Positions 15,370 through 44,658 of a stretch of 55,017 nt of DNA are shown in pieces (positions within the stretch are counted from its first letter, which is position 1; every line of letters begins with the position of its first letter). The translations under genes and the position numbers were made by a program. Source of the DNA: Bigelowiella natans CCMP2755 (taxonomy: Eukaryota > Protista > Cercozoa); the NCBI GenBank assembly GCA_000320545.1, contig ADNK01002880.1:1-55017 (forward strand), given 5' to 3'. The notes beneath the pieces are model-generated. The model ran no database searches. It was not told where the DNA came from and saw only the letters and a program-made list of their open reading frames with translations.

Positions 15370-17167
15370 CTATTGCTTCCAAGGCAGCCTTTCTACTTCC
15401 GATTGTACAAACGGACAGTCAACAACGCCTCGATCTGTGAAATAGCCGTTACATCTGTACTTATATAGAATGTACACTAGTTGGCCCCGGCGACATTCGG
15501 GGCACTTGGGCAGGGCGCCACGCATCGCACCGTCGGCACAACGCTGAACCAGCTCGTACTTCTTCAAACTTGAAGACGACTGGTTATTCCGCCGCAGCAG
15601 CCCTCGAAGGTATTCGGCGGTCTTCTCCTCGAAGCCTTGCAGGGCCTTCGATTCCTTGACCATGCTACGGGTGTCCATTCGCCTATGCTCTGGGATGTAT
15701 AACGACCTTCGAGGTGATCCCTCATGCGATTGTGTGGTCGGCGATTTTCCAACGAGCGCCTCTTGCTGCTTTCGGGCATACGCGACGAGGCTGCAAGCGA
15801 TGTGAATGCATGGTCTTCGTATTCGTTTCCTTCGATGGCCGCTTCTGTACCGTTCGCACGAGCACCTCCACGATTCTACCCGGTCGTCAAGGAACTCCAC
15901 AACAACCTTAGCGGAGCTCGAAGATCGGGAGCCCGCGTCGCCGTCTTCGCACTTTGCCAGGAGGGTCGATCCGCTTTCCAGCGAAATCTTCTTTGTCACC
16001 GTTGCATGCTTTTCGCGCGCATCCATCCACAGGTATGTTCCCAGAATGTCTTTGAGCCCCTCTGCTGTAATGATCGGCGGGGTACATGGGTATCCTGCTT
16101 GGGAGCTGCTGGCGGTGCAGAGCTTTGACTCAGGGAGCTGCAGGCTTCGTCGCTCTCTTTTTCTCTGGCTGCTACAGCTTTCGCCATCCACACGCTCTGG
16201 CCTGCGCTTTCGAGATCGATGCGGCGATCGAGAATTCACGATTCTATTGCGCACCTTCAAATGGACGGAATCACTGTTTGCGCCAGGAGAGTCCCTGCTG
16301 GTTTCTTCCGCAGTTTTTGGGGCTTTCACGGCTGCCTTCTGGAGACGGCTTTGCACAGTCCGAAGATGCTTCTCGATCTGGCCGATGTAGAAGCTTCGAG
16401 GTTTCCGGTCAAACACTGCAGCTCCAAGTTCCGCGTTGACGTCGTCACGCAACCTGTTCTCTCGCGCAAGCTTTAGCGCCGCTTTAAAGCTTTTCTCACT
16501 CTCTTCCCACCTTTGCTCGCGGGCGTATAGAACTCCCTTCAATTTGTGCCTTTTTGGAGAATACGGGCGCACGGCGATAGACTTATCACATTCAAAGTGT
16601 GCTTTGGCGAGGTCTTTTAGCTTCGCGTAGCAGGTTGCGCGGCGGTGGTGTAGCTCTGCCTTTGAGGCTTGAAGCTGTTTCACTTCAGTGCAAACTTTGA
16701 TGGCCTCCTCCAGCGGCATCAACGCGCTTATGTGCCTGTTTTTATGCATCAAGACTGCAGCATCATTGAGAAGCTTGGTCACTTTGGCATCCCGCTCCAT
16801 GAGCTCGGATGGTGAAACCTCTATAAAACTGGGAAAATCCTGTCGGGGGGGCAGCACTGTCGCTGCTGCATTGCTCGAGGGCTTCGTGATAGCCGTCGTT
16901 GAATGATCTTTGCCCGGTACCTCACTGTGAACAGCTATCGTGGGAGTCTTGGCCTCCTCACCGGTTTCGTCTTTGTCATCCACTCGGACGCCAAAAAGCA
17001 TTTCCATTAGATTCTCTGGCTCGGGATCGTTGGGGTGTCCACCCTTATCGAAAAACCCAGAGGAATGGCCCTTTGGTGCTTCGCTCACTTTAAGCTTGTC
17101 ATTGGACGTAATCGGACTCGTTGCTTCACTCCTTGCACTCTGCATTAGATTGCTGTTTAATCTTATT

Positions 17168-17212
<45 letters not shown>

Positions 17213-19462
17213 GCATCGTGATATGAATCGTCTGACTCGGGGGAATTCGGAATCAGCGTGGCTGCGATTTTGGGTGCCCCCTGAGAAAACTCTGGCTGGC
17301 CACATGGGATGGCATCGCTCGACATCTGCCGAGAGGCATCTGACACGATGCTCGACGATTTTCCAGCCTTCTTTCCAGTTGCTGGCGACGTCCTGGGAGT
17401 GGCTGCCGTTTTCGGGATGGCAGCTTGAGGTGGTCCAGAACTAGAACTATCGAAGAGATCATCCTTTGAGCTATGTGACTTCAGCCCTTTCCCTTCCCCA
17501 ACCTCCAGGGCATTAACTTCTACCGTCTTTCTCGTGCCGCGTTGTACTGTTGAAATGGCATCCGCATGCATTTCCCTCGGAATGTCTCCTGGAACTATTG
17601 TTATTGCGGCTGCAGCGCTTGTATTTCTAAGCCCTTCTTGGACATTCGCTGCGCTACCAATGGAAACAGCACCGCCAGCCTTCCTATTCTTGATTGCATC
17701 CACAGAGCCCATCTTTGTGCCTGAGTGTTTGGCTCGAAGCTCACTTGTCCCTGCAGTCTTTTTCAGTTGACGGGAACATCGATCACGAGGCGATTTTCCA
17801 CCGTCTGCACTATTCTTCCCAGCTGGAGTCTCACTCTATCGAAAAAAATCATTGAAGGGGAAGATGTAGGAGTGTTAAGCACTGTGAACAAGCGCAAATA
17901 TGAAAGCATCCAGCATTCTTTCAATGAAACGTATCGGTAACATATTCGGGAGGTCATTACTTAGGCTACCAAATATCTCATTTTTCTTACCTTGCGCGCC
18001 GCTTTATTCGGGGTCCTCACAGACAAATGAGTGCTTCTACTTTGGTTCGGAGGAGGACATATGCGAGAGAGTTCAACCAGCAAGGCCTGGCGGTCTCCTG
18101 CAATTTGAAAGGGGGTTTTCGGTTAATCTATGCTTGGTTAAAGTAAGTAACACTTCGTGGTACCGTATGCGTCTAGTCCCATTTCGTCTCTCAAAGCCAA
18201 GTTCGTGATTGTCAGGAGTGCTGATCACATGAAATAACACAGAGGATGTTACCACTTTCCCTTTTCCTTAGATGTTCTAAAATCTCTTGGGACATACGAA
18301 TCAAAAAGATGATATGTTGAACAAAGAGAATAAATTTTCCATAATTTCCAAGCAATTTACTACCGCGTCCGTCAACGTGGTGCTTCTTTAGCATACTGAC
18401 CACTCTGAAGCTCAAACGAACCCGCCGAGCCCAAGCAACAACCTGCAGGTTAAAATCCATAAAATAGGGCTGGAAATTTATCGCCCGTTCATATTGTCAA
18501 CCTCTTCCTCCGTCCACATGGTAGCTTTCTTTTCTCGTGTCCGCACTGCGCAGTTTTCTGATTGCCTCTTTCTCCTCTTCCTCTCATATTTGACCGAGCG
18601 CTCGCAGATACCGCCACTGCTCCCATTGCTCGATAAGGTGTCGACGTTCTCTTGAGTCAATACTTCTTCTTTCAATAGGAAAAATATTTTTTCTTATATA
18701 TTAGTTGGGTTAGTTTTCTCAAATAAAGGATAATCGCAAGAATACCTTCGTCCTGTGTAACAAGCCGAAATGCAAATTTAAATTCTGACGAGGCCTTGTT
18801 TGATCCGAATACTAGTATATCGCCATCCTAATATCGAATTTATAATATAAGATTACCTTTCATTCGCCCGTCATTGAAATGTGCGAAACAAAACTCACAT
18901 GAAGCATGGTAGGGGCTTCTATCTTCACATCGTTCACGAAGATCTAAGAATTGGTTTGAAGAATATTAGTTGAATCATGAAATAGGGTGGTGACTTTCTT
19001 TATTACCCCGTTGGTGCTTCCCTCGTCTTTGATCTCCCAAAAGAAGTTCTGATTTAGTTTTGGAATTTTTTGACTCACGAAGTGAATGCTTCCATGCTCT
19101 CTGCTTATCATCCCTAGTTCGGAAGAATACAACACGTATAACTTTGTTAGAGGTACGAATTGGATGCATTGAGAGATAAAATCATTTACTTACGGGGATG
19201 TCTAGCGCTATCCAGCACTAAATCGGAAAATTTTGGATTACGGCCAATGATGTAGGTCCCCTTTTCCGGGGCCAAACGGAACTAAGAAAGACGAAACATA
19301 ACACGGCTTGCTCGAGACATCAACGACTTTGGGCAAACCTGTTTTGGAAAGCTTCTGGTTTGTGGAACACTCGCTGAGAGTAAAATAAAATCAGATTTCG
19401 GCTAGGATGGCATGATAATAGGCGCGCAGACCGATCCATTCCAAGCACGCCTCGGGTTCCAT
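15370..19462 (-). CDS. FHA + TPR + SWIM zinc finger + PADR1 (PARP Zn3-like) protein
   Basis: N-terminal exons give YIIGRNPKFSDLVLDSARHP..MISREHGSI..WEIKDEGSTNG..DGDILVFG (FHA GR/SxxH/NG). The 780-aa terminal exon has polyQ, TPR helices (AELHHRRATCYAKLKDLAKAHFECDKSIAVRP), WRCSC...PCIHIA (SWIM CxC..CxH) and LLRRNNQ..ELVQRCADGAMRGALPKCPEC..YRCNG..C (PADR1). Middle exons and the start (ATG 19462) are tentative. Confidence 0.8.
17170..17211 (-). repeat. (CAG)14 polyglutamine tract in the FHA-TPR-SWIM-PADR1 gene
   Basis: In-frame Q14 in ORF 15370-17712. Confidence 0.9.
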
Positions 19463-24379: not shown

Positions 24380-24607
24380 CTAGCATCCAAATGTATAAGC
24401 AGCTTCCTTCGTCTCCACTACATGCCACATGTACCAGCTGCCTATTGTACGATACGGTCTCCAAGCATTAGCAATCTTCAAAAGATCATCTCGCCCGGGA
24501 AGCTTTTCCACTATAGTCTCTGCATCAGGATCAATCTCCATCTCGTACAGACGCTTGAACGCCTTCCTTACAGCTAAATCTCCCACCTGAATAATAACGA
24601 CGCGACA

Positions 24608-24639
<32 letters not shown>

Positions 24640-25406
24640 GTGTGTATGTATGTGTGTGTGTATGTGTGTGACAAGTCCCAATCGCAGGTAGAGTGGAGAG
24701 TTTGTGCTCAATTCCGCACATGTATACCGGAAGAATGTCTGGACGTCCAAGCGAGAACATCATAAACATTTGCACCGACCTTTTGTTATTAATGGTGAGA
24801 AAGACGAACAACAGACAAGCGAAGATTCGGCCAATAAAAAATGTGCCAACAGCAACTCACCCAAGCCCAAGAAATGCAAGCACAAAAATTCAAGATGACG
24901 TGCTTCGGTCCAAATTTTCTAACAACAGCTCGCTTCCTCTCCATTACCACTCGCCGAGGCCCTTAACTTTGCAGAGCGCCTCCATGACCTCAATATCCTT
25001 CATCTTACGCAGCTTCTCATTGGTCAGACTTCCATCGCCAAATTTGTCGGAGAGATCGAGTAAATAGCTCACCTTCGGCCGCGAAAGGCCTATTGCTAGT
25101 CTTTTTTCATGGTTCTCATCAATCCCGAGACCCTTCACGGAGCTTGGGTTAAGATGCGACTCCCCGCCGCAGGCCTCCACAAGTCTGGCAAAAATCCGTG
25201 CGGCTGACTTCACGGAAAGCTGCTGGTAGACGATACTTCGGCATAGCGACTTAAACGCATCCAAGCCAAGTCGTGGGATTAGACTTGTTGGAGGGCCGAT
25301 TTGTCGAATGACCTGAGAAGTGGGTTGTATAACAAGAAAGGAAGAGGAGTAGGAAGTAGTAATAATAACTAATTGGGCTAAAGAGCTGCTCAGCATGAAA
25401 TCATTA

Positions 25407-25450
<44 letters not shown>

Positions 25451-25702
25451 CAACCCGAGCCAATCTTGCATCATTTTCGGAGAGGTGGCTGAGAGCTGCT
25501 GATAACAGCTTTGTTGATATTCTCGGTTGGTTTCCAGTATGGTCCTCCCCAACGGTCAGCTTAGCCAAGCTCAAAAGCTTGCTCGATGCACTCTTTGCCC
25601 TCTTCTTCGGAGATTTTTTCGAGGGCTTTTTCGTTCTTTTCTTTGCCTTTTTCGGCTGGGTGGAAGCTGCATCCACCATCTTCCCTTCCTCCTCGTGACA
25701 TT
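24380..25702 (-). CDS. AlkA/MAG1-type DNA-3-methyladenine glycosylase (HhH-GPD); standalone from ATG 25679 or the C-terminal module of the upstream helicase
   Basis: FKSLCRSIVYQQLS, GLSRPKVSYL, HhH LCKVKGLGEW, MFSLGRPDILP|VGDLAVRK (catalytic Asp) and WRPYRTIGSWYMW, all joined by GT-AG introns. Confidence 0.93.
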
Positions 25703-25868
25703 CTAGGTATAGAAACACACCAAGAAGAAGCAAAATCAGTGGCCCTCCCTACCTTACTACCAAACTCTAGTTGCATCGAATTAAAAAAAAAAAACTACGA
25801 GAATAAGCATAAGCATGCTCTGCACTCTCCTGCCAGTATTCTGATTATTTTGAATAATGCCCACGTAA

Positions 25869-28800
25869 TCATAGCTGGAACGCATACATACCAGAGGAGC
25901 GAGCGTCAGATCTGCTGCCTGCACGAGAGGCACTTCTAGGCACTCTAGCCGAGAAGGCCCCATCGTCTCGGTAAACACGGTCGTCATTATTTTCAGGTAG
26001 GACGGTTCCAATCTTCCTCTTCTTCCGCTGTTTTCCCGCTGTGTTTACGGGCGACGCGGAGCTGCTGCTGGCAGCGCTATTGCTGACGAGTGCGTTCATC
26101 CGCCGGCGGAATGCTTTGCCCAGTGTCCCGAGTTTGGACGTCTTCGCGTCCCGATGATGGCCTCCCGGTGCCAAAGACGCTGCAGCTGCTAATGAAGCAT
26201 CAAGCCCATGCTCCTGGAAGCGATGCGACAACGGATCGAGGAACTGGCGGAAGAATGCACCGCAAAGTCGGATGTTGGCCGCCTCGATCTCCTCGAGCGT
26301 GTTCGCAGCGTAGAGAAGGGAGAGAATCAGAGTCTTCCTTTCCTGGCCAGGCCGGTCTATCCGCCCCTTGATTTGTTCCATGATGTCCCCGGGTTGAGGC
26401 CGGATTATAATGGCGTCGCCTTCTTCCTGTAGATTCAGCCCGTGGGAGGCAGCTAGCACAGACACAACAAGAGGGCCTTGGGAACTATTATCATCTTCTT
26501 TTTCATCACGATCTCCGTCCTGCCCTCTCCTCCTACGGCCAACAGTTGTCTTCCTCCTTTTCTGTTGCTTGCGCAGCTTCGAGGAAGGGCCGGGTAGCGA
26601 CGCCAGGCTTCTCGCGTTGGGAATGAGTTTCAAAAAGCGAGCCTCCTCCAGCTTCGTGAGCGCGAAGACGATTGGCCTCCGCCCCTCCTCCTGCAAGGCT
26701 TTGACCTCCGCACAAATAGAGGCTGGGAGCAGCCGTGTCTCGAACCGCTTGCGCAAGAAAGCCTTCAGTCGGGAAAATATCAGACGCGCGTCCCTCCCAA
26801 CCTGAAGGGCACTTGTCTTCAAGATGTCACGGTACGCACGTGCATCGTCCTCATCCAGCCGAAGCCCGCGGTAGCGAATCTTCCACTTGCGGCGATTCTC
26901 CGGCACGTGACAGATGATGTGCTCCCTGAGCAAGCATGGCAGGTATGCTCGGGTTCGTGGTAGTGACGAGCGCAGCATCCTAACCATGTAGAACAACTTC
27001 GAGAACTTTGACCGGAAGAACGTCGCTGAGAGCAGCAGCACTCCGCATCGCGACGCCGAAACCTGTAATATATATATATATATATATATGATGATATTTT
27101 TGAGAGTGAGGTGATGAGGATTCGTCGCGAAAAAGCCTGGAGATGCAGATGGCTCTACCTGTCGCCAGGCTTCCCCAGTGTGGAGTGCACTGTCGTTTTG
27201 TATCGAAAGACACTCGTCAATAACCACAAAGTCCCATCCTGTTTGCTTGGAGAAGATATGGTCGCGGGCCCGTGAGAGCGTCGTGATTACGAGGCTTCTC
27301 GAGGACAGCACAGCGTCCTTCCCTCGAGGACTCGAGCCTGCAAAAACACACAAGGCCGTCAAACATTTAGTTGCTTGGCTCTCATAACCTCTTCATAATT
27401 CCCACTGCTGTGTTGGTCTCTCCACCCTCTTCCCATTTCTCCCGTTTCCCTCACTCTTACGTATCGGTGGCCCCACTCCAGCGGAGGAGACGCCTTTGCT
27501 CACCAGACGTCCGTTTGCCTTCTGGCATATGATGTCGAAGCCGCGCGTGTGGATGAGGGCCTGATTCGCCCACTCATTGATGAGAGGATTGGTCGGGACA
27601 AGGACGAGAAATCCCTTCCGTTCCACGCGCCTCTCCTCGAGATGGCGACTGATCTCGCACATGCTGCCTAGCGCCGTAAGCGTTTTCCCCGCCCCCACCG
27701 CACTGGCATCTGCAAAGCCGCGCTTCCCCGCCGAGATACCGGCCATGATTTCGCCCACCGCTTTGCACTGGTGTTCCCACAGCGCCGTCTTCACAACGGG
27801 GCATGGAAAGGAGGGACGTGGCCGGAGCCTTGTTGTCGTCAATCGGCTTGCTGAACTCCTCGAGCCGCTGTCGCCGTCGCCACATTCACCATCGTGCTCG
27901 CATACTTCACCACGCACACCGCCTCTATCTATTCCCATCGCCTTGCTGCGGACAAGGGCGCTATCTGTCGCGGCGAAGGACTGGCCGTCATCGTAGGTGC
28001 CAAAGGCTAAAAACTGCACGCAGCGGAGGAGATGCATGAAGGTGGGCGATGACGTGCCACGTAAGCGAAACCTGAGTTCCCCACACCGGATAACATTGAA
28101 CGGGTACAACGCCTGCAGCATGAAGAGGAGGCGCAGCATGACGCCTTCGGTCATTTGCTGAACTGACCCTACTCTTCTCAACCCTGAAGAATCGACAGGG
28201 GAGATGACGATGGTACTATCTCCATAACTACTGCTAGTGTTGCTGCTGCTGCTGCTAGAGCCGCCGCTCTCCACATCCTCTCGAGTCACGAATTTTACAA
28301 AGAGATCTCTCCAGACTTCGCGACTTAACTCGCTCCGATAGCTTCCATTGCTACTGCTGGCACTTTTCTTGTCGGCCCTCTTGGCAAGTCGCAGCCAGTC
28401 GTACACAGCATGAAATCGCTGCTGATTTCTATCAAATGCAAAACACTTTCTGTTGATCGTGACTCTCTTGGAAAAAATGAACATAATATCTAGGTGGAAA
28501 ACATAACGCAAAATGAAATATTTATACGCAGGTGAAAGATGTAGTCAATCTTATATTAGCTTCTTCGGATATTTTCTCCCCTCTTCGCTCATTCGTTTTA
28601 TAGAACCTTCTCTCCTCCTCTATCTTCCTTTCCTTCCTCGCTGCAGCCGAGAGAGATTGAAGCAGGGCAAAGCCCTCACTCCCAGTTTCGCCTTCCTGAT
28701 CACCCTCATCACCATGCTGGCGCTGCTGCTTGCTATCCCCAGTTCCCATGGAATCCCCATGCGAACAACCTTTTTCTTCCTTTTTATTTTGTGTGTCCGC

Positions 28801-29468
28801 TGTTCCTTCTACTCGGACATAAAGCGCCTTTTTCACCAACGACTCCAGCTGCTCCGGCATTTCCTTGAAAACCAGCGGCTTTTCGCACGGTACTAAGGCG
28901 CGGCTGGCGTCGAACGCCGAGAGCCTCAGCCCGTTTGCAAAGAACGACAGGGTTGGAGTCTTCTCGCTGGCGCTGCTACTATTACTCCTTCTCGCCTTAG
29001 ATTTTGGTTTCCTCTCTCGATCAATTTCTACCCGAACTAAAATGGCCTTGGGGAGTGGCTTTCCGTTCCCCCCCCTTCTGCTAGTATACCTGAAACACAT
29101 ATGAATCATTAGGATTATGTTTGTCCTTGCGTGTATAGCTTCGTACAATCTGCTACTTGCATATGCCTCGCCCATACATGAAGCAGCCAGCGCTGCATGC
29201 TGAACTGCATGCAATGAATCACCGATGATCAAACTCCCATCGCCAGGCGAAGCCAACTGGAGGAGCCCCGGGATTGACGCGAATACCAGTTTCGAGCTTT
29301 TCTAGGACCTTCCTCCTCACGGCGCATTTCACGGAAGAATCTTCTACAATTTGCGACGCGGAAGCCTCGTTGGAACTTGTCGAAAGCACAGTTTGCACGA
29401 GGAATGGATCCTGCTTGTCGCCGCACAAAGTAGCAATGTACGCTCCGGAGTAGGAGCTTGATGAAGGC

Positions 29469-29505
<37 letters not shown>

Positions 29506-32500
29506 TTCTTGAGGATGTGATAGTATCTTGAGGCCGGGAGAACGAGCTAGTACTGCCCACATCGCGACTTTGACGCTTTCGAATACTGGAATTCGTGGTT
29601 TTTTGTTTCCGTTGTCTTTTTTGATTTGCGTATGTGTCCTTCTGCTTCCCTCTTGTACTGTTTCTACAATGTTCGTTTATTGTGCGTTTATCCCCCCCCT
29701 CACCTCCGGCGTGGTCTGTATCGCTCTCTTTTGATAGACCAACGATGTGTGAGGCCCCAAATAGCTGAAGAAAAGCCACCTGAATCGGTAAAATGAGAAT
29801 GCATAAAATGTGGAGATCCCATAAAATTTGTCGCGAATCTGAATTCCTCCCCCATCCATTCATACCAACACCAGACGCACGATGATCAGGACTATTACAG
29901 TATAATTTATGAATCTACCCGTGCCTCATATTGCGTTGGCTTTCGTCCGTATTTTGCAAGATCTCCGTCACAGATAGGCAACACCCCTGGTGATTCCTCT
30001 TTCTTTACGACGGTGTTTATGCTCTTGACGGCAGTTATCGGCGTTGTCGCAGTTGCAATTTCCCTTGGCATTAGCGATGATTGTGATCCCCCAAAGGCTT
30101 CAGATCCGAGCATTGCTGTTTTTCTAACCGTCTTTGTCACAGATGATCTTGTGAATGGTGTAATCCCAGCCATTGTTGCTTGAGTTGTTGCGGCAGTATC
30201 TCGAAGATGTGTTTGGATAGCTTCGATTACCCGCAGAAGACGCACCTCGCGACCTGATAACGTGAGGACATCTTCGATAGGTTTTCCGAGCCAGCGCAAC
30301 GACGATGCCTCCTCGTCTCCCCGCTGCTTTCCCCCTTTTTGTCCAGAAATCAAACGATTTAAAAATAAGATGCTAGCACACACATACAATACAGGCATAG
30401 ATATACACTCCGCACACGCACAGATATCGTATACTCATTCATATATACAACTTGGTTTTACCAAAGAGACTAGTGTCACGATAAGAATGGGAACGAGAAC
30501 GAATATAACAACGCAAACTCAACCAACACGTGAAACATATTCAATCACTCCATCTCTGGCTGGTCTTAATGTACCGAGGTTGGTAGACGTCCTAGGCTCC
30601 TGCGACGTATTAATGTCAGGCACTAACGTGTCATTTTGACTCCCAACGCTGGTCTCCTCCTTTCCTTCCTCAATGATCTCCTCCGTTACAATTCCATTTT
30701 CCTTTTGCTTCTGGTGCTTCCTAGCTGTGACGGAAATGCCATCATTACCAATGTTGGCGCTTTCTCGCTTTTCTGTTTTCCCCTCCCCAGCATTATCACC
30801 GTCGCCTTCCCCATCCTCGTCCTCAGACGTGTCCTTGCCCATAAACTGCATGATTCGGAACAGCTCCTGACGGGGCCCACCGTCCCTTCTCGATGTTCGC
30901 GCATTGACACCGGAACTGAGTCGCCACACGAGGCCGGAGAGCGCTCGCAGGGAATGCTGATAGTCGCAACAGTTTAAGTCTGCGTGGTTCTTTGTGGTGC
31001 AATGTGTTTGAATGAAAACGTTATCATCGCTCTCCGCCAATCGTCTAGAAATTTAGGTTTGCGAGAGATTATAAAACTCGAAATCTAACACTATAACTTG
31101 CTGATTCTTCTACCTGAGAGGCCTCTCTCGGAGGATACGGCAGCGACGCTTGGAGGAACAATAGCATATTGCTATGAAACTGATGATCAAATGCACAAAG
31201 TCGCGCTCGATCTTCAGCAACGGACACCTGGTGCAAATCCACATCGCCAACCGCCTTGTCCTCGTGCGTATCATCTTCAGAATAGGCTTTGAGAGGCATC
31301 AGGTTCCTCCCTCCCTTCAACATCGTCTTGGTTTGACAATTGCTGGCTCCTTTCACCTTTTTGTTCTTCCCCCTCTTTCCGTTGGTCCTTTCGGCCGGGC
31401 TCAGCATGCTGAGGTAGCGCAAAAGGAGGTTTTGCTCACCGGCGTTGAGGGGCATTAGCATGATTGCTGCACGGATGCTATTCCGGAGATACATCTCATG
31501 CTCCTTGGGATCATCGTGAGTGCCGGCACTGTTCTTAGTAGAACGACCAGCATTTGCCTTCTCCTCTCTATTTCCACTAGGCCTTAATCCTCCCTCAAAT
31601 CCGGAGCAAATATTTTCCAGAAGCTTCTCGCTGCTATCCGCTCTAAATCCCCTCCATGGCCAGTGCGATTCTAGGAAAATAATTCTCATACCGTACAGTA
31701 CAGATATGATCTATTGGCTTTCGAAAGCTATTTAATTGTTTCTTCATAGGGCGTTCATTCATTGGGAAATTTGCACACGCACCGCAAAACCACCAACCCC
31801 CCGGCCCCACCCCACACCACTACCTGGCTCATCGTTAGCCTGTAAGGCCAGAGCTGTGTTCTTGCAGGCATGCAGTAGGGGTTCGGGTAACACGAAACGA
31901 GAGTCGACCATAGCAATTAGAGATATTGCGAGGAGATCGTCAAGCCCCACCATGGTCCGCGTGGCCTTTCGGAATGGGCCGACGTCTTCCAGAGCTGCGA
32001 CGAATAGCCTCCACGCGAAAACGAAAGTTCCTAGAAAACCAAAAACAGTGACGGTCTGATTTCTCTCGTTCATCTGGCGATTCGAAGTCAAATCTCACCA
32101 GACTGCTTCGCATCGGGCGTTCCGGGGTTTTGAGTACTGTGGCGGTTTCCAGCTCGAGCTAGCACCTCTATCGCCTTGTTACAGTTAACACATTGGACAG
32201 AAGTAGTAGGGAATTTGCGTCATTGCCATTAGAGATGCGAGAGGTTGCATATTGTGATCCACACGCACCAAGCAACTTTCGCAAAATCTAAACATAGCCT
32301 CCCCCGATTCTATTGCGCCCCTCAGAAGAAGAGGCTTGATGATCGGCCATCACAATGATAAAATAGCCTGATGCTTATCGCGTATCCCGCACAAGTAACT
32401 ACCTCGACAAGGGACTGAGGCCCGGATAAACAGAGACCCCGTCGTATGCACCTTTGCATCAGCAATGCTGGATACCGCAGCTGCAGTGCAGCCTTTGTTG

Positions 32501-33078
32501 CGCGGCTGAATAGCGTCGAATCGTGTCCGCTATTGCGACGACGGTGGAAGCTGCGATGGGTAATAGAGCCGATTTCTGTTACTCCTTGATCAGGCTTTTC
32601 CTCATGGTCGAATCCAGGCTCTTCTTCCTCATCCACAAGTTCATTTTCTTCATTTCTCTCTAGATGAGGCAAGAGGCTGGGATCGACGCTCAATACCCCT
32701 ACGCAGAGAGAGGGTGACCCGCCCAGATCTTGATGTGCATTTCGTCCTCGTGAGTTGGGCAGTGGGGATGGCTTGTCTACGCTCCCTTTCTTGCTTGTGG
32801 CTTCTACGATTGAATGATATACAGCACGTATGAATAGGAGGGGACTCGTTAGGGAAGAGGCTGAACAACAAACTAAAACCAACACACCCACCCACACACA
32901 CTTAAACATATACATTTATAGATTTACATCCATGTAATACATTATATTTATTCATTTCTTTACATGTACTAAATGCACTAGCGTGCGCTCGGAGGTTTGT
33001 TTTGATGACCGTTTTGTTTTGTCTTGTGCTCCGATCGCGATCTCTGCCTTTGCTGATATGAGTGACGCTTTTTCGCAT
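25869..33078 (-). CDS. Large SNF2-like SF2 helicase/ATPase (roughly 2000 aa) with an N-terminal RarA/MgsA-C-like helical motif
   Basis: Q motif LWEHQ, motif I GFADASAVGAGKTLT, Ia LVLVPTNPLINEW, II FVVIDECLS, III LLLSATF, V SHGLNLQ, VI QIKGRIDRPGQ. The upstream long minus-strand ORFs from 28522 to 32915 link by GT-AG introns. Putative ATG at 33078. The single-gene model is inferred. Confidence 0.82.
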
Positions 33079-38911: not shown

Positions 38912-39414
38912 AGCCAGCGCATTTTTGGTCCCTCATTCAGCTACAATTCGGTTGAAAAGCTTAAATTGATTTCAAAAACAGGCAGCCTTCCTGGACAGAA
39001 TATAACTGGACTCAAGGATGCCTTTTTGCTCACAGTGGACATCGATACGTTTGACACCCGCACGACGGTGCAATGGGGAGAAAATGGCACAGTAACCTCT
39101 GCGAAGGACGTGGCGGGAATAGGTATAAATGCACAAAAATAAATATAAGTGCTCTCCTTCAATAATCCTCCTTCTCTTCCATCACAGGCCCGGTTTACAT
39201 CACCGGGAGCACAAACGGAACATTTGGGACGGCATTAAAAGGTATGCGCAGCTTGTTGCATTTTTAATTTTTTAAAGGAAAATTAAAAAATAAAACTTTG
39301 ACGGCCTACCGACTAATGCCACATCGTTTATGGGTAACGAAAAAAAATTGGCAAATATTTGCATTAATTAAATTTAGGTCGTCACTTTGTTCGATAATGT
39401 CTCAGCTCTATTTC

Positions 39415-39465
<51 letters not shown>

Positions 39466-41433
39466 TTTCCCCGTCAAGGAACTCACGATTTAATGATTTC
39501 TGAGCCCTGCCCGGTGACATCAAGCCCCTCTGCCAGTCCAACGTCAGCAGCGCCCAGCAGCACCCCCACCGGCACTCCTTCCGCAACTCCAACCACCACC
39601 CCAACGAATGCTCCGAGCTTAACCCCACTGACTCGCTCTCCTGAGACACGACTGCCATCGATGGCGCCTCAAACCTCATCACCATCTCGCAGCCCGGCGA
39701 CGAGGCTACCCTCGCAAAGCCCTACATCGTCAGTTCAAGCACCAATACCTCTTCAGGCGCAGTTCGGGGACGCTGTCAGGAGCATTGTCGTGGGCTTTTC
39801 TTGGAAGACGGACAGGCCGGAGGGCGGGGTCCACTGCCGGAACCTCGTCTCCTCCTCCTCCTCCCCCTTCGTCTCTGTGCGGGATCTCTTTGGGAGCGGG
39901 ACTGCCAACAAATCCCTCACCTGCAAATGGCGCACGGGCACAGAGCTCGAAATCCAACTAGGGGCGCGCTTCGAGGCTGAGGTGGGAACCAACATCACGG
40001 TGCTGGGACGTGCGATCTACGACAGCACTCGCACGTTACCCTCTCCAGCCACTCGCCTCTCGATTCTCGCCCCAGCCAAGCCTACCCCCGTCACCGCTAT
40101 TCTGACCGGGCCTAGCAAGGTGGCAGAGTGTGATAACCTTACTCTGGACGCGAGCCAGAGCTTGGGAAGGGCTGGGAAGCAGTTCTCCTTTGACTGGGGG
40201 TACGTGCCTTTGCCGACGACATCTTCCTCTGTCGCGCAGAGACTCAGGAGCCTCGCTGCCGCGAACCGAAACTCCTCAGCGCTTGATTTTCCCTCGATCG
40301 CTGATTTGGATGGCGGGCTCAATAACTTCAGCCTCACAGTCACGAATTGGCTGGGGGCCGCGGATACCAGCTACTTTGTAGTCGAGAGGCTTCTGGTCGC
40401 CATACCCAGGGTGCAGTCGTTCAGCCAGGCCGTTATTCGCACAAAAAGAGAGCAGCAGCTTGTGATTCGCACCCGTGTTAGCCCTCCCTGCGGCGCCGAA
40501 GATTCCTCCTCCCTCCGATTTATTAATAGGGGTACGTGGACGCAGCTCTTTCGGGGCTCTCCGTTGCTTTCCCCGTCTCAGAGCGGCTACTCGTCCCAGC
40601 TGTCAGATCACGCAGTGGCCATTCGTGACCGAAATAGCTTCTACCTCACCCTGGCCGAGAACTCGCTAAAATCCGGCCACGTCTACGGGTTCAGCCTCTT
40701 GGCGCAGTCGTATAGCGCAAATGGAGTGCTGCTCGGGCAGCTGACTAGCACGTATATCGTGGTCGTGGAGGACGCTCCTATATTCGCTAGAATTTCAGGG
40801 GGCGATTCAAGGAAGGTCCCTGTTTTGGAAGGAGCGAGCACCCTTCTGAGCTTCGACGGCAGTCCTTCATACGATCCGTCCAACAATTCTTTTCCTCTTC
40901 GTTACAACTGGAGTCTCACCCACCCCAATGAAACCACCGCGCCTTTGCAGGAAACACCGTCGGCGAGGCATCGACGAATCTCTATCGCCTCCTCCTCTCT
41001 CCAAGACAACTCCACATACATCGTAAAGCTCACGGTGTTCGGCCAGCCGGCCAGTACGACTGGCAGCCAGCGCTTCAGGACGTTCTCACAGAAGATCGTG
41101 ACACAAAACGTGCCCATCCCTACGATGAAGCTGAAGAGCAACGTGCCGGGCTCAAAATTCGATGCGGGCAGCATCCTTCGCCTCAAAGCCTCCTCGGAGA
41201 ACTACGCAATCCAAGATTTGGATCTTACCTGGAGTGTAGAGCCCAGCCAGAATTTGGATCTCTCAAGTTCCGATGTGCTACGGTCGGAACCTAATTCTCC
41301 CTCTCTCGCTCTTTCCGCAGGGAGTCTGTCTCCAGGCGTGCAGTATTCCTTTACGATATCGGGGGCAAGTCGTCGTGGGCTGGTTGGCTCTGCTACTACG
41401 TTTGTCGTAGTGAATTCCCCTCCAAGCTTAGGT

Positions 41434-41482
<49 letters not shown>

Positions 41483-44400
41483 CGCGTGATCATGTGCTCC
41501 TTACGTTTTTATGTGTAGCTGTGTACTTTGCGTCGTCTATATTCGTACATATATACCGATGCAATCAGCACAACACGGTTGTCATAGTAACCGTCGCAAA
41601 TTTGCGCGTTTTCTAGGGGTGTTGAGAGGGGGGGTTTTTTTGTTCTATTGACTCCAAACCATGACTGTGTATATTTCTCTTCATTCCAATGGAATTGTTA
41701 CGATTAGGAACTTGCTTCTCGACCCCGACGGCGGGGATCGCGCTCAAGGATAAGTTCTTCCTAAAATGCGTTGGATGGGTTGATGAAGATCTGCCTCTTC
41801 GCTACGCCTTTTTCATGGAGACCAAACTATCGGGCCGCGCGACACGCGTGTCAGTAAGTGGCCTGCAAGACCTCAATTCGTACTCCACATTTCTCCCGGC
41901 GCCGGAGTCGGGGGGGCCCAGCACGGGGGGGGGCGTAAGTAATGAAAGTGTCAGCATAACTGCGCAGATTGAAGATAGTCTGAAGTCATCTTCTTACTTT
42001 GAATTCCGTGTGTGGGTCTCCAACGAGGAAAAGTCGCTCTCTGAAAGCCTGAGCCGCATCAACGTATCTTTGAGCCAGGGGGACACGCAGAGCTTCAAGC
42101 TGCTCGTTCTCGACACCGCGAAAGACCTGAAGTCAAATGTGGTGAACTCCACGCAAGAGATCCGCGCCTCGAGGGCGCAGCTTCTGGACATCATCCAGGT
42201 GGACAAATTGGAAAGTGTAGATGCGGCTCAACTCATCGAGGCAGCCACCGATTTCGGGGCTGCGCAAGAACTCCAGGCCAATGTGAGGAAGAGTGCTGTG
42301 TCCAAGATCAGCGACATCGTAGGAAGAGCGGAATCGAGGGCTGCTGCTGCATCAGGGTCCTTTGGGGATGACGGCGCAGAAACAGTGTCGACCTCGTCTC
42401 TCACCGATGCAGATGCTCTCGAGCTTGCCCAGGCATCCATAGGCGCTCTCGACAACGTGTTCGTTGCCAACCGCCTGGACGCAGTCGATTTCACCGACGA
42501 GGACAGGGTGGAGATCACAAATGCAGCGGAAACGGTGCTGAATGGCCTCAGTTCGCTAATCCTACAAACCGCGGTGTCAGGGGAGGAAAGAACCGACGTG
42601 ACGGCTGATACGATTCAGTTTTCAACACAGCTGAAGCCTGCAACCAGTGCAAATGCCTCAAATCTCACGACGACTTCGGGCGCGTCGTTGATCATCCCCG
42701 GGGCGTTGACATTGCCACAGCGAGATGTTCCATTACGAATCGCTGTTACCCATACAGTGGACGCACTCTACCCACTTGAGGCCACGGCCGCATCTGGGCT
42801 GGTAATTGTGGAAGTGTATCAAAATCGAACCAAAATTTCGCAAGCGCCGTCCCCATTTGTGCTGCATATTCCTGTAAATTCCAGCAAGATTGCTTCGGCC
42901 CTGAGCTCTGCCTCGAATGGCGGACTGCTTTCCTCCACGGGCCCCAGTCCCTCTTCCTCGCACAACTACACCTGCCGGTACTGGTCGAAAAGCGAGGCGA
43001 AGTGGAAGATTAACGGGGTGCGGAAGAGATCGGAAGGCGCAGCACGGGTTGAGTGTGAGAGCGATCACCTCACGGCATTCAATACAAAGGCTGAGGTCCG
43101 AGTCAGCCTCAATACCTTTTCGGAGGAAGACATCACCATTGCGGCATTTTCCTGGCGAAATCCCGTCATGGTTATCCTCTCCTTCGTGATGGCCGGATTC
43201 GCATTTGTAACATGTTGCACCATCTTGTACGACTACAAGCTGGCCGCAGCGCACGGGGTGAAGTCGTCGGACAACTTCTGGAAGCAGCAAAATAAGATGC
43301 GTTTCCTGCGGCTCTCGAAGGGTAGAAATAGCCGCACGTGCAAGCGGCTTTCCCAGTGGGGGCTCCGGCGCCGCCACCCTTGGTTTTCTATATTCGTACG
43401 CCATCCTGGGGACTACATGACCTCGACGAAAAGGCTGATGACATTGATGATCATGATGTTTAATGGACTCACCGTGTGCGCGCTGATGCTGGATCAGGAG
43501 CAGCAGCTTCCTCTGTTGGATGCGACCTTCTCCGCAGCGGTGGTAGCGTTCGTACTTGCCTACCCAATACCTGCCACCCTTGACACCTTGCAGAGACGGG
43601 TGATTCCGAAGCGGCTGCGGATTAAGATATCGGGCTCTGAGAACACGAGCGGATTCTGCAACTACCTCACCCTCATCCTGGGCTTCCTCTGCGGCGAGCT
43701 AGAGCTGGACGACTTCGAGGTTGAAGAGGGGGAGGAGGACGAGGAGGAGAACAAGGACCAGAAAAAGGGCGCCGAGAATGGAAGCCACTGTAACAAGGAA
43801 GACAGCAAAAGCAATCAGGTTGTCAGCAAGGCGAAGGAAAAAGATAACGGTGGCGAGATTAGCCAATTAAACCAGGCCGATAGAAACAGCGGAGGCTATT
43901 CTGTGACTTTGACATCCGAATCGTTGCCTGGAATGGCATCGACAGGCATTTGGCCCAAATCGAATGCAGCTCTCATGTCACAAAATGAGTTAAAGAAGCG
44001 AAGAACAATGCATGACAACGTGGAATCTTCATCGAAGAAAACTCTTTTTTCCGACGAGCAAGCAGTTGGAACGCAGCAGATGAACTGCCTCTGCTGCAAC
44101 TTTGTCAGGGATGCGGATATGGACAAAATTTCAAACCACGATTGGGTGTGGAAAGACTTTTTCGCAACAGTCTTTGCCTACATCGTTGCGCTTGGATGCT
44201 GGTTCATCCTCGTGGTGCTCTTTTGGAAAATGAGAAGCTCTGCAACACCATGGATATCAGCGACATTCCTGTCGTTTGTCCAAGACTTCGTAATTCGCAT
44301 CATGCAAATCATCTTTCTGGACTCTATAATGTTCTTTCCGTGCTTTGCCGTCATATGTTGCTGCTGCTGCTGCTGCTGCTATGATGCAGAGCCAGTTCCT

Positions 44401-44658
44401 ACGGATGCCGAGGATGTGCACAGTGGGTTTTACAGCGACATCATGTTTAGGATTGATGTGGCCAAAATTCGACTTGTTCGTGGAGTTCTTCAAATTGATG
44501 CAAAGACATTGAGAGCTGAAGGAGTTAGGACCGGGTTGAGGATTAGGGCCGTTCATGTAGATGGTCTAAAGATTGAGTGGAATGACTCGGAGATGCTAAA
44601 ACTCCACTGGAATCGAATAAGATGTACCGAGGAACATGCAGATGTGTCATTCCGTTAA
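36833..44658 (+). CDS. Polycystin-1-like cell-surface protein: signal peptide, SBBP-type beta-propeller, S/T/P stalk, REJ, GAIN/GPS, multi-TM
   Basis: Signal MILSLLVFFAATPQHADG; propeller repeats (GVAADLEGNAYLVGQTDG..KDCFVQRYD..W; LYVAGDTT|GSLPG..KDAFL; VYITGSTNG); TPSATPTTTP stalk; REJ motifs (LTLDASQS, FDGSPSYDP, PPSL|GTCFSTP..CVGWVDEDLPLRY); GPS CRYW..W..CESDHLTAF; PKD1-type HPWFSIFVRHP..KRL; several hydrophobic helices. Confidence 0.85.
37228..37295. repeat. Perfect compound-microsatellite palindrome A(CA)13(TA)7(TG)13T in an intron
   Basis: Read directly from the sequence; 68-bp self-complementary tract. Confidence 0.9.

Follow-up and report, generated by a model that had tools for sequence, protein, structure and literature searches.

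The 55,017-nucleotide contig ADNK01002880.1 of Bigelowiella natans CCMP2755 (referred to here, at its whole length, as the window) has on its minus strand an open reading frame (ORF) for a SNF2-like helicase, followed closely by a frame for an AlkA/Mag1-type DNA glycosylase, and the locus raises the question of whether these are two genes or the two ends of one. A sequence-only reading had proposed that a short intron joins them into one polypeptide. The present analysis supports, with good confidence, a single gene from 24383 to about 32900 on the minus strand, comprising 12 or more exons and some 2100-2300 codons, in which a divergent SNF2-like ATPase and an AlkA/Mag1-type HhH-GPD glycosylase are joined across 25891-25703.

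The evidence for this is mainly comparative. When 1.84 billion cluster representatives were searched by phmmer with the 507-amino-acid (aa) helicase ORF, there were 247 matches, 150 of them listed, and the closest relatives among the matches listed have 50-54% identity and lengths of 893-2586 aa. Nine of these (P0018, P0019, P0020, P0021, P0022, P0024, P0026, P0028, and P0029) possess a ResIII/SNF2-like domain together with a C-terminal HhH-GPD domain. A local domain scan identified the glycosylase domain in 21 of the 150 listed representatives. In every close relative of the helicase that is near full length, a Lys-rich linker is followed by a C-terminal AlkA/Mag1-type glycosylase. Fused members include proteins from Diplonema papillatum (KAJ9465403.1, 2586 aa, named “putative helicase”), the labyrinthulomycete Hondaea fermentalgiana (GBG27498.1/A0A2R5GCS2, 1922 aa, named “DNA-3-methyladenine glycosylase 1”) and the dinoflagellate Durusdinium trenchii (CAK9105775.1, 1754 aa, named “Putative helicase L115”). 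There are also fused ORFs in the Trinity transcriptomes of three diplonemids (Artemidia motanka, Lacrimia lanifica, and Diplonema ambulator) and a fused MMETSP transcript (P0023), bringing the fused relatives that are assembled transcripts to four.

Two of the orthologous genes, those of Hondaea (5769 nucleotides, nt) and P0020 (5175 nt), are uninterrupted stop-free genomic ORFs whose exact translation is the fused protein; P0020 comes from an environmental assembly and groups in the diplonemid clade in both trees. As these are single ORFs, the fusion is not an artifact of gene prediction. In P0182, at 48% identity the nearest relative, a single 687-aa ORF covers the C-terminal half of the helicase, the linker and the glycosylase, and its genomic contig has introns in the helicase, yet none breaks the junction region.

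The spliced window protein and its orthologues align over their whole length, taking in motif VI, the conserved FFRQ(F/Y)LDPLS block, a Lys/Ser-rich linker of variable sequence and comparable length, and the glycosylase. Its C-terminus WRPYRTIGSWYMWHVVETKEAAYTFG is almost identical to those of Diplonema and P0182 and near-identical to that of Hondaea, while the Durusdinium C-terminus is much more divergent. Matches of nine orthologues (tblastn) and of the family hidden Markov model (HMM) succeed one another along the window, starting at 32507 and reaching 24386, with HMM segments 1122-1421, 1411-1476, and 1474-1591 crossing the junction. The Diplonema, Hondaea and Durusdinium proteins share the order N-terminal module, SNF2-like ATPase, Lys-rich linker and Mag1-type glycosylase, though the genes of Hondaea and P0020 are intronless, whereas the window gene has its at least 12 exons with an intron exactly in the linker. 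The window protein is shown to be orthologous to fused proteins of at least three eukaryotic supergroups, and diplonemids, labyrinthulomycetes and dinoflagellates share the fusion with this organism. The proposal of one polypeptide is thus upheld by fused close orthologues, two of them single genomic ORFs and four of them transcripts, with which the window is colinear.

At the junction itself, the end of the helicase ORF reads, on the minus strand, CGC TCC TCT G followed by GTATGT, with the exon ending at 25892 and the G of GT at 25891. The acceptor reads ttttgcttcttcttggtgtgtttctatacctag followed by AA, its AG ending at 25703 after a 30-nt pyrimidine-rich tract that ends in TAG, and the next exon begins at 25702. 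The donor and acceptor positions of the sequence-only reading, 189 nt apart, are thereby confirmed on the minus-strand letters. Splicing would join G and AA into a Glu codon in the frame ...SRSDARSS-E-CHEEEGKMVDAAS..., and the frame spliced at 25892^25702 is continuous through the glycosylase to the TAG at 24385-24383 once three more introns of the glycosylase part are removed. The unspliced helicase ORF (open 27392-25872, minus strand) instead ends in the tail GMYAFQL before TGA 25871-25869, this tail being seven codons, counting the split one, rather than the five first given. The glycosylase frame is open from 25748, and its ATG at 25679 lies 8 codons past the acceptor.

The 189-nt segment has a GC content of 0.39, a T content of 0.38 and one T11 run, and within it lie the stop that ends the read-through (TGA 25871-25869) and a branch-like CTGAT site. 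It resembles the other five introns of this gene, which are backed by homology (lengths 96-168 nt, GC 0.27-0.47; donors GTAAGA, GTAGAG, GTTGGA, GTAATG, and GTATAC). However, 13 GT occur in the last approximately 94 helicase codons and 20 AG in the upstream stretch over which the glycosylase frame is open, and since these form 91 phase-compatible pairs, an in-frame GT..AG pair is expected by chance. Only one donor close to the end of the ORF is consensus-like and only one acceptor has a pyrimidine tract, and these two do share a phase, for which the chance is 1 in 3. The sequence alone is weak support for the junction, and the comparative evidence is decisive. Given both, the intron is very likely spliced in Bigelowiella natans, the remaining probability going to a lineage-specific fission or to a spliced-leader acceptor if the source were a euglenozoan.

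A number of points weigh against the single-gene reading. The exact junction is not fixable by homology, as the linker sequence is not conserved, and the position of the window in the trees is unstable, being sister to the Hondaea group in one and to diplonemids in another (helicase-only). No transcript or protein of the source species was found, the 507-aa helicase ORF giving nothing above 45% identity among 5.8e9 proteins, and an exact look-up of three window ORFs returned no record. Neither a 34-nt probe for the spliced junction nor a control probe from an exon had a match in the JGI metagenomes, where the organism is absent. Helicase-only members of the family exist in giant viruses (~1250 aa), so the motor can work without a glycosylase. 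A two-gene model is also formally conceivable, as the helicase frame reaches a stop 7 codons past the donor, and 24 nt past the acceptor comes an ATG (A at -3, G at +4) followed by a Lys tract resembling a nuclear localization signal (NLS). A search with the 125-aa glycosylase exon returned relatives of ~200 aa only, owing to its length filter.

Under such a two-gene model, the helicase would end at TGA 25871-25869 (GMYAFQL) and a separate 282-aa nuclear Mag1-type glycosylase would begin at ATG 25679, with the GTATGT and the pyrimidine-AG being coincidental or, in a euglenozoan, with the AG acting as a spliced-leader acceptor. The early stop past the donor and the good-context ATG with its N-terminal Lys-rich, NLS-like tract fit this model, as do the 91 in-frame GT..AG pairs that chance alone yields and the stand-alone glycosylase relatives of ~200-230 aa, which are the norm. 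Diplonemids trans-splice, and the window adjoins them in the helicase-only tree. However, near-full-length close orthologues are all fused, diplonemid transcripts included, and the best donor and the best acceptor agree in phase. Furthermore, a terminator and a promoter would both have to fit into 190 nt. Gene orientation alternates frequently along the window, and long, ORF-poor gaps on the kilobase scale lie between the genes, so a spacer of this size would be atypical. The same alternating strands and gaps argue against polycistronic packing. TpA depletion is uninformative as an intergenic marker here, because the TpA observed/expected ratio is ~1.0 within the 189-nt segment and no TpA-erased block occurs across 21-34.5 kb, including downstream of the glycosylase stop. 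Fission of the gene is considered very unlikely.

It is somewhat easier to envisage, although still unlikely, that both forms are made, with splicing producing the fusion, intron retention producing a helicase-only protein ending 7 codons into the intron, and an internal start possibly providing a free glycosylase. The retained-intron product would terminate nearly at the endpoint of the helicase-only proteins of viruses, which lies between a few and a few tens of residues past the core, and an in-frame Met is present at 25679. However, neither the Met nor the early stop is remarkable as a chance occurrence, and no such switch is possible in the orthologues with continuous ORFs. In a separate case, the helicase-only P0211 was considered as gaining a glycosylase through a transcript isoform; this was rejected, as the isoform only has a longer N-terminus.

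With the single-gene reading, the features of the locus are as follows, from the 3′ end of the gene upward; all lie on the minus strand.

24383-24586 (coding 24386-24586), minus strand: last exon, starting with VGD (presumed catalytic Asp) and ending ...WRPYRTIGSWYMWHVVETKEAAYTFGC, with stop TAG 24385-24383; C-terminus near-identical to fused orthologues, and a PDB match to S. pombe Mag2.
24587-24727, minus strand: intron of 141 nt, GTATAC...TTCAG, with microsatellite (GT/CA)31 at 24608-24670; removal restores the conserved LPVGD.
24728-24779, minus strand: short exon (W)SVQMFMMFSLGRPDILP between the helix-hairpin-helix (HhH) hairpin and the presumed catalytic Asp, placed by orthologue alignment.
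24780-24947, minus strand: intron of 168 nt, GTAATG...AAAAG, homology-backed.
24948-25312, minus strand: main glycosylase exon, holding the HhH-GPD core up to and including the helix-hairpin-helix KGLGEW, supported by Pfam HhH-GPD, tblastn and HMM.
25313-25454, minus strand: intron of 142 nt, GTTGGA...CTCAG, with (AT)21 at 25408-25448; removal restores the conserved DARLARVIRQIGPP block.
25455-25702, minus strand: linker exon with E-CHEEEGK, Met 25679-25677, the Lys-rich tract 25652-25593 and the start of the glycosylase; aligns with orthologue Lys-rich linkers (HMM 1411-1476).
25703-25891, minus strand: proposed junction intron of 189 nt, phase 1, GTATGT...CCTAG, its splicing being inferred and not observed.
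25892-27062, minus strand: large helicase exon with motifs III, V, and VI, then a low-complexity tail that opens the linker (HMM 1122-1421, score 374).
27063-27158, minus strand: intron of 96 nt, GTAGAG...TTACAG, with (AT)11 at 27068-27089; removal restores AWRQVSASRCGV as in all orthologues.
27159-27337, minus strand: helicase exon with motif II DECLS (27218-27204), supported by HMM and motif search.
27338-27460, minus strand: intron of 123 nt, GTAAGA...TTGCAG, homology-backed and carrying an in-frame TGA that splits two long ORFs.
27461-28430, minus strand: exon holding the last part of the N-terminal module, followed by LWEHQ (27782-27768), the Walker A motif GAGKT (27695-27681) and motif Ia (ResIII 27.4 bits; HMM 838-1073, score 259); alternatives for its 5′ boundary are 28421 or 28466.
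28600-32507, minus strand: upstream blocks of the N-terminal module at 28600-28992, 29234-29629, 30696-30965, 31114-31551, 31807-32037, and 32397-32507, supported by colinear HMM and tblastn matches; the last block is the MgsA-C-like start (...LLMQRCIRRG...).
32508-33078, minus strand: 5′ region with the frame open back to ATG 32915, outside the homology, as family N-termini are not conserved.

The upstream exons are given as HMM-supported blocks, a listing of frame-compatible GT..AG pairs having offered several near-equal candidates at most boundaries. For the start of the gene, the ATG at 33078 chosen in the sequence-only reading would need one more intron, while the frame is open to ATG 32915. 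Its length of roughly 2300 aa is plausible, with the exon blocks giving about 2100-2300 aa. Repeats are present at several places in the gene. Dinucleotide microsatellites, (GT/CA)31, (AT)21, and (AT)11, occur in three of the six introns mapped at the 3′ end, and a perfect (GAT)12 at 29469-29505 in the upstream part would encode poly-Ser, poly-His or poly-Ile depending on the frame. A stretch of ~1 kb at 29629-30696, falling between HMM positions 605 and 619, has no orthologue counterpart. It is acidic or trinucleotide-repetitive in parts and contains acidic open frames of low complexity; it is either a lineage-specific insertion or the site of larger introns.

For annotation, the locus shows that gene callers can break such a gene in two when an intron falls within a low-complexity linker. 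On Logan contig ERR14888981, the helicase-only call P0036 (1842 aa) lies in the clade of the fused P0038 and P0039, with a separate 438-aa ORF on the same strand 55 nt downstream. This gene call may be another split by an interruption in the linker.

As predicted from sequence, the protein is shown to have a variable N-terminus, an MgsA/RarA-C-like domain, a ~600-aa module, the ATPase, the linker and the glycosylase, in that order. With regard to the last of these, the window exon 24947-25555 scores 31.2 bits against Pfam HhH-GPD (cutoff 26.2), orthologues reaching 50-60 bits. The HhH hairpin KGLGEWS is found at 24964-24776 and LPVGD at 24733-24569, placing the Asp ~20 residues after the Gly-rich hairpin. 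Every full-length fused orthologue in the alignment has the Asp of VGD, apart from P0029, the model of which departs from the others at this point; the Asp column aligns with the VGD of 2H56, and we take it to be the equivalent of AlkA D238 and Mag1 D170. Among PDB structures, the orthologue domain is best matched by the B. halodurans 3-methyladenine glycosidase 2H56 (E-value 1.4e-32), further relatives being S. pombe Mag1 (3S6I), D. radiodurans AlkA2 (2YG8) and Mag2 (4B21), with the four structures ranging from E-value 1e-32 to 1e-18. The match to OGG has an E-value of 1e-6 only, making alkylpurine glycosylases the closest solved relatives.

Mag1, 2H56, and AlkA2 (E-values 1.4e-32 to 2e-23) share with this domain a compact HhH-GPD fold without the AlkA N-terminal domain, and the hairpin and the Asp are kept. 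They are, however, stand-alone proteins of ~220-230 aa, while here the domain forms the C-terminal ~10% of an ATPase of more than 2000 aa. The domain is thus assigned to the AlkA/Mag1 branch of HhH-GPD enzymes with predicted excision of alkylpurines, and the AlkA/MAG1 call made beforehand agrees with both the Pfam score and the nearest PDB relatives. Its activity is not to be assumed, as S. pombe Mag2, also a close match, is reported to be inactive.

The ATPase has intact superfamily 2 (SF2) motifs, namely I (GAGKT), Ia (LVLVPTNPLINEW), II (DECLS), III (LSATFFRS, 27032-27009), V (HGLNLQ, 26444-26427), and VI (QIKGRIDRPGQ, 26375-26343), all of which are invariant in the family alignment. Window exons match Pfam ResIII (27.4 bits, cutoff 22.5), with DEAD below cutoff, and orthologues score 23.6-39.9 bits against SNF2-rel_dom, some above and some below its cutoff of 24.9. 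A single-sequence phmmer search found no PDB relative of the helicase, while the family profile retrieves ISWI, Snf2, Rad54, RapA, CHD1L, and DDM1 first (E-value 2.7e-11). As the motifs are intact, the profile finds Snf2 types and the SNF2-rel_dom scores straddle the cutoff, the motor is a divergent Snf2-like SF2 ATPase, with translocation on double-stranded DNA predicted. The label “SNF2-like” of the sequence-only reading holds for the family profile only, the window exons themselves matching ResIII. Between the two enzymes, the Lys-rich linker already described is found as a Lys tract at 25652-25593 matching the linkers of orthologues, and it is probably disordered and nuclear-targeting.

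Upstream of the ATPase is an N-terminal module of ~700 aa, conserved across the family in fused and unfused members alike, for which no Pfam match was found. Its AlphaFold model has a predicted local distance difference test (pLDDT) score of 81.6. With the first ~120 residues of this model, five MgsA-C structures are among the top six matches (Z 5.7-6.6, root-mean-square deviation 3.2-5.8 Å, 17-22% identity), although a Z of less than 8 can arise between helical domains in general; the consensus S.LQK.IRRG at the start of the module fits MgsA-C. Nothing was found with Foldseek against the PDB. The last ~100 residues have weak winged-helix-like structural matches (Z ~4), and the remaining ~600 aa of the module are alpha/beta, without a clear solved counterpart in structure searches. 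In the model, the first ~120 residues resemble the helical C-terminal domain of the MgsA/RarA family (E. coli MgsA/RarA, yeast Mgs1 and human WRNIP1), with a Z that is modest for a helical domain. Unlike in the MgsA/RarA family, where an AAA+ ATPase domain comes before the C-terminal domain, none precedes it here.

The helicase with its ~700-aa module is a widespread gene of giant viruses in helicase-only form. The model of the N-terminal module matches the “DEAD/SNF2-like helicase” A0A3G4ZTR7 of Edafosvirus (Foldseek E-value 7.5e-32 over 705 columns) and also Pithovirus LCDPAC01. In IMG/VR (GVMAG), 19 giant-virus loci (L004-L022) on AT-rich contigs have the helicase at 30-37% identity and 1070-1380 aa; these ORFs end a few residues past the helicase match (up to ~90 aa in one case), with no glycosylase nearby. 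A tree of the helicase core has two sides with 100% support, one with 18 IMG/VR loci and the other with 12 fused and four helicase-only sequences. Two helicase-only members on the fused side, P0040 and P0033, have virus-like neighborhoods (DUF5906, DNA ligase, kinase; L023, L024). P0036, with its 438-aa ORF downstream, is another of the four. The L115 gene of Mimivirus, after which the Durusdinium protein was automatically named, is 3741 bp (PMC8097291). The giant-virus L115-type protein has the same N-terminal module and helicase as the window clade but ends after the helicase, whereas the window clade continues into the linker and glycosylase.

As to what the fusion might do, the ATP-driven motor may translocate on or distort duplex or chromatin DNA and so bring its tethered glycosylase within reach of alkylated or deaminated purines to which a free 25-kDa enzyme has poor access. 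The glycosylase would then flip out and remove the base, and the resulting abasic site would be handed on to base excision repair. The flexible basic linker would join two apparently intact catalytic centers, and the N-terminal module could serve for oligomerization or recruitment. A similar logic, with a Snf2-type motor and a base-acting enzyme in chromatin, is seen in kinetoplastid JBP2, which is a SNF2 ATPase fused to a thymidine hydroxylase, and in the remodelers ALC1/CHD1L, CSB, and ISWI, which act in trans in base excision repair. In contrast to JBP2, the partner here is a glycosylase and not a dioxygenase, the ATPase is of a divergent viral type rather than a canonical remodeler, and homology is confined to the ATPase core.

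The JBP2 precedent of a SNF2 ATPase with a base-modifying domain also suggests a different substrate, in that the fusion may be real but its glycosylase may remove a lineage-specific modified or deaminated base (5-hydroxymethyluracil, 5hmU; base J derivatives; hypoxanthine) over chromatin domains, as an epigenetic or genome-defense editor. HhH-GPD enzymes include the ROS1-type demethylases, and fused forms are found in dinoflagellates and diplonemids, lineages with 5hmU-rich DNA or base J. On the other hand, the closest solved relatives are the 3-methyladenine glycosylases Mag1 and AlkA2, and the labyrinthulomycetes, which are not known for such bases, share the fusion, making this substrate distinctly improbable. 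Little credence is given to the further proposal that the family is a processive, ATP-powered scanning glycosylase on chromatin, derived from or donor of the giant-virus helicase, which would remove such a lineage-specific base (5hmU, base J derivatives or hypoxanthine) and not sporadic alkylation.

For a fusion with predicted action on alkylpurines, the interest lies in an open problem of base excision repair, namely how small glycosylases locate rare lesions in chromatin. To our knowledge, the remodelers ALC1, CSB, ISWI, and INO80 assist this pathway only in trans. A natural covalent fusion of motor and glycosylase would provide a single polypeptide in which the coupling of ATP-driven translocation to excision can be tested directly, and genetic manipulation is reported to be feasible in Diplonema papillatum and in thraustochytrids. 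The link to the widespread giant-virus helicase also gives a route to the role of the viral protein. A full-text literature search found no paper on a helicase-AlkA/Mag fusion, and fusions of UDG with PolA are the sole fusion type in PMC10201439. The remark in the sequence-only reading that its author knew of no characterized protein with this architecture agrees with that search, with the qualification that orthologues are already in public databases under automatic names. The architecture is built from known kinds of domains and is uncharacterized, and it is not a categorically new system.

Elsewhere in the window, two adjacent ORFs of 782 and 997 aa at 39268-44655 on the plus strand both match REJ (polycystin/receptor for egg jelly), covering profile positions 45-318 and then 313-445, and are probably one gene split by a short intron. 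By Pfam, an open frame of 821 aa at 15373-17835 on the minus strand combines TPR repeats with a PADR1 zinc ribbon at its C-terminus.

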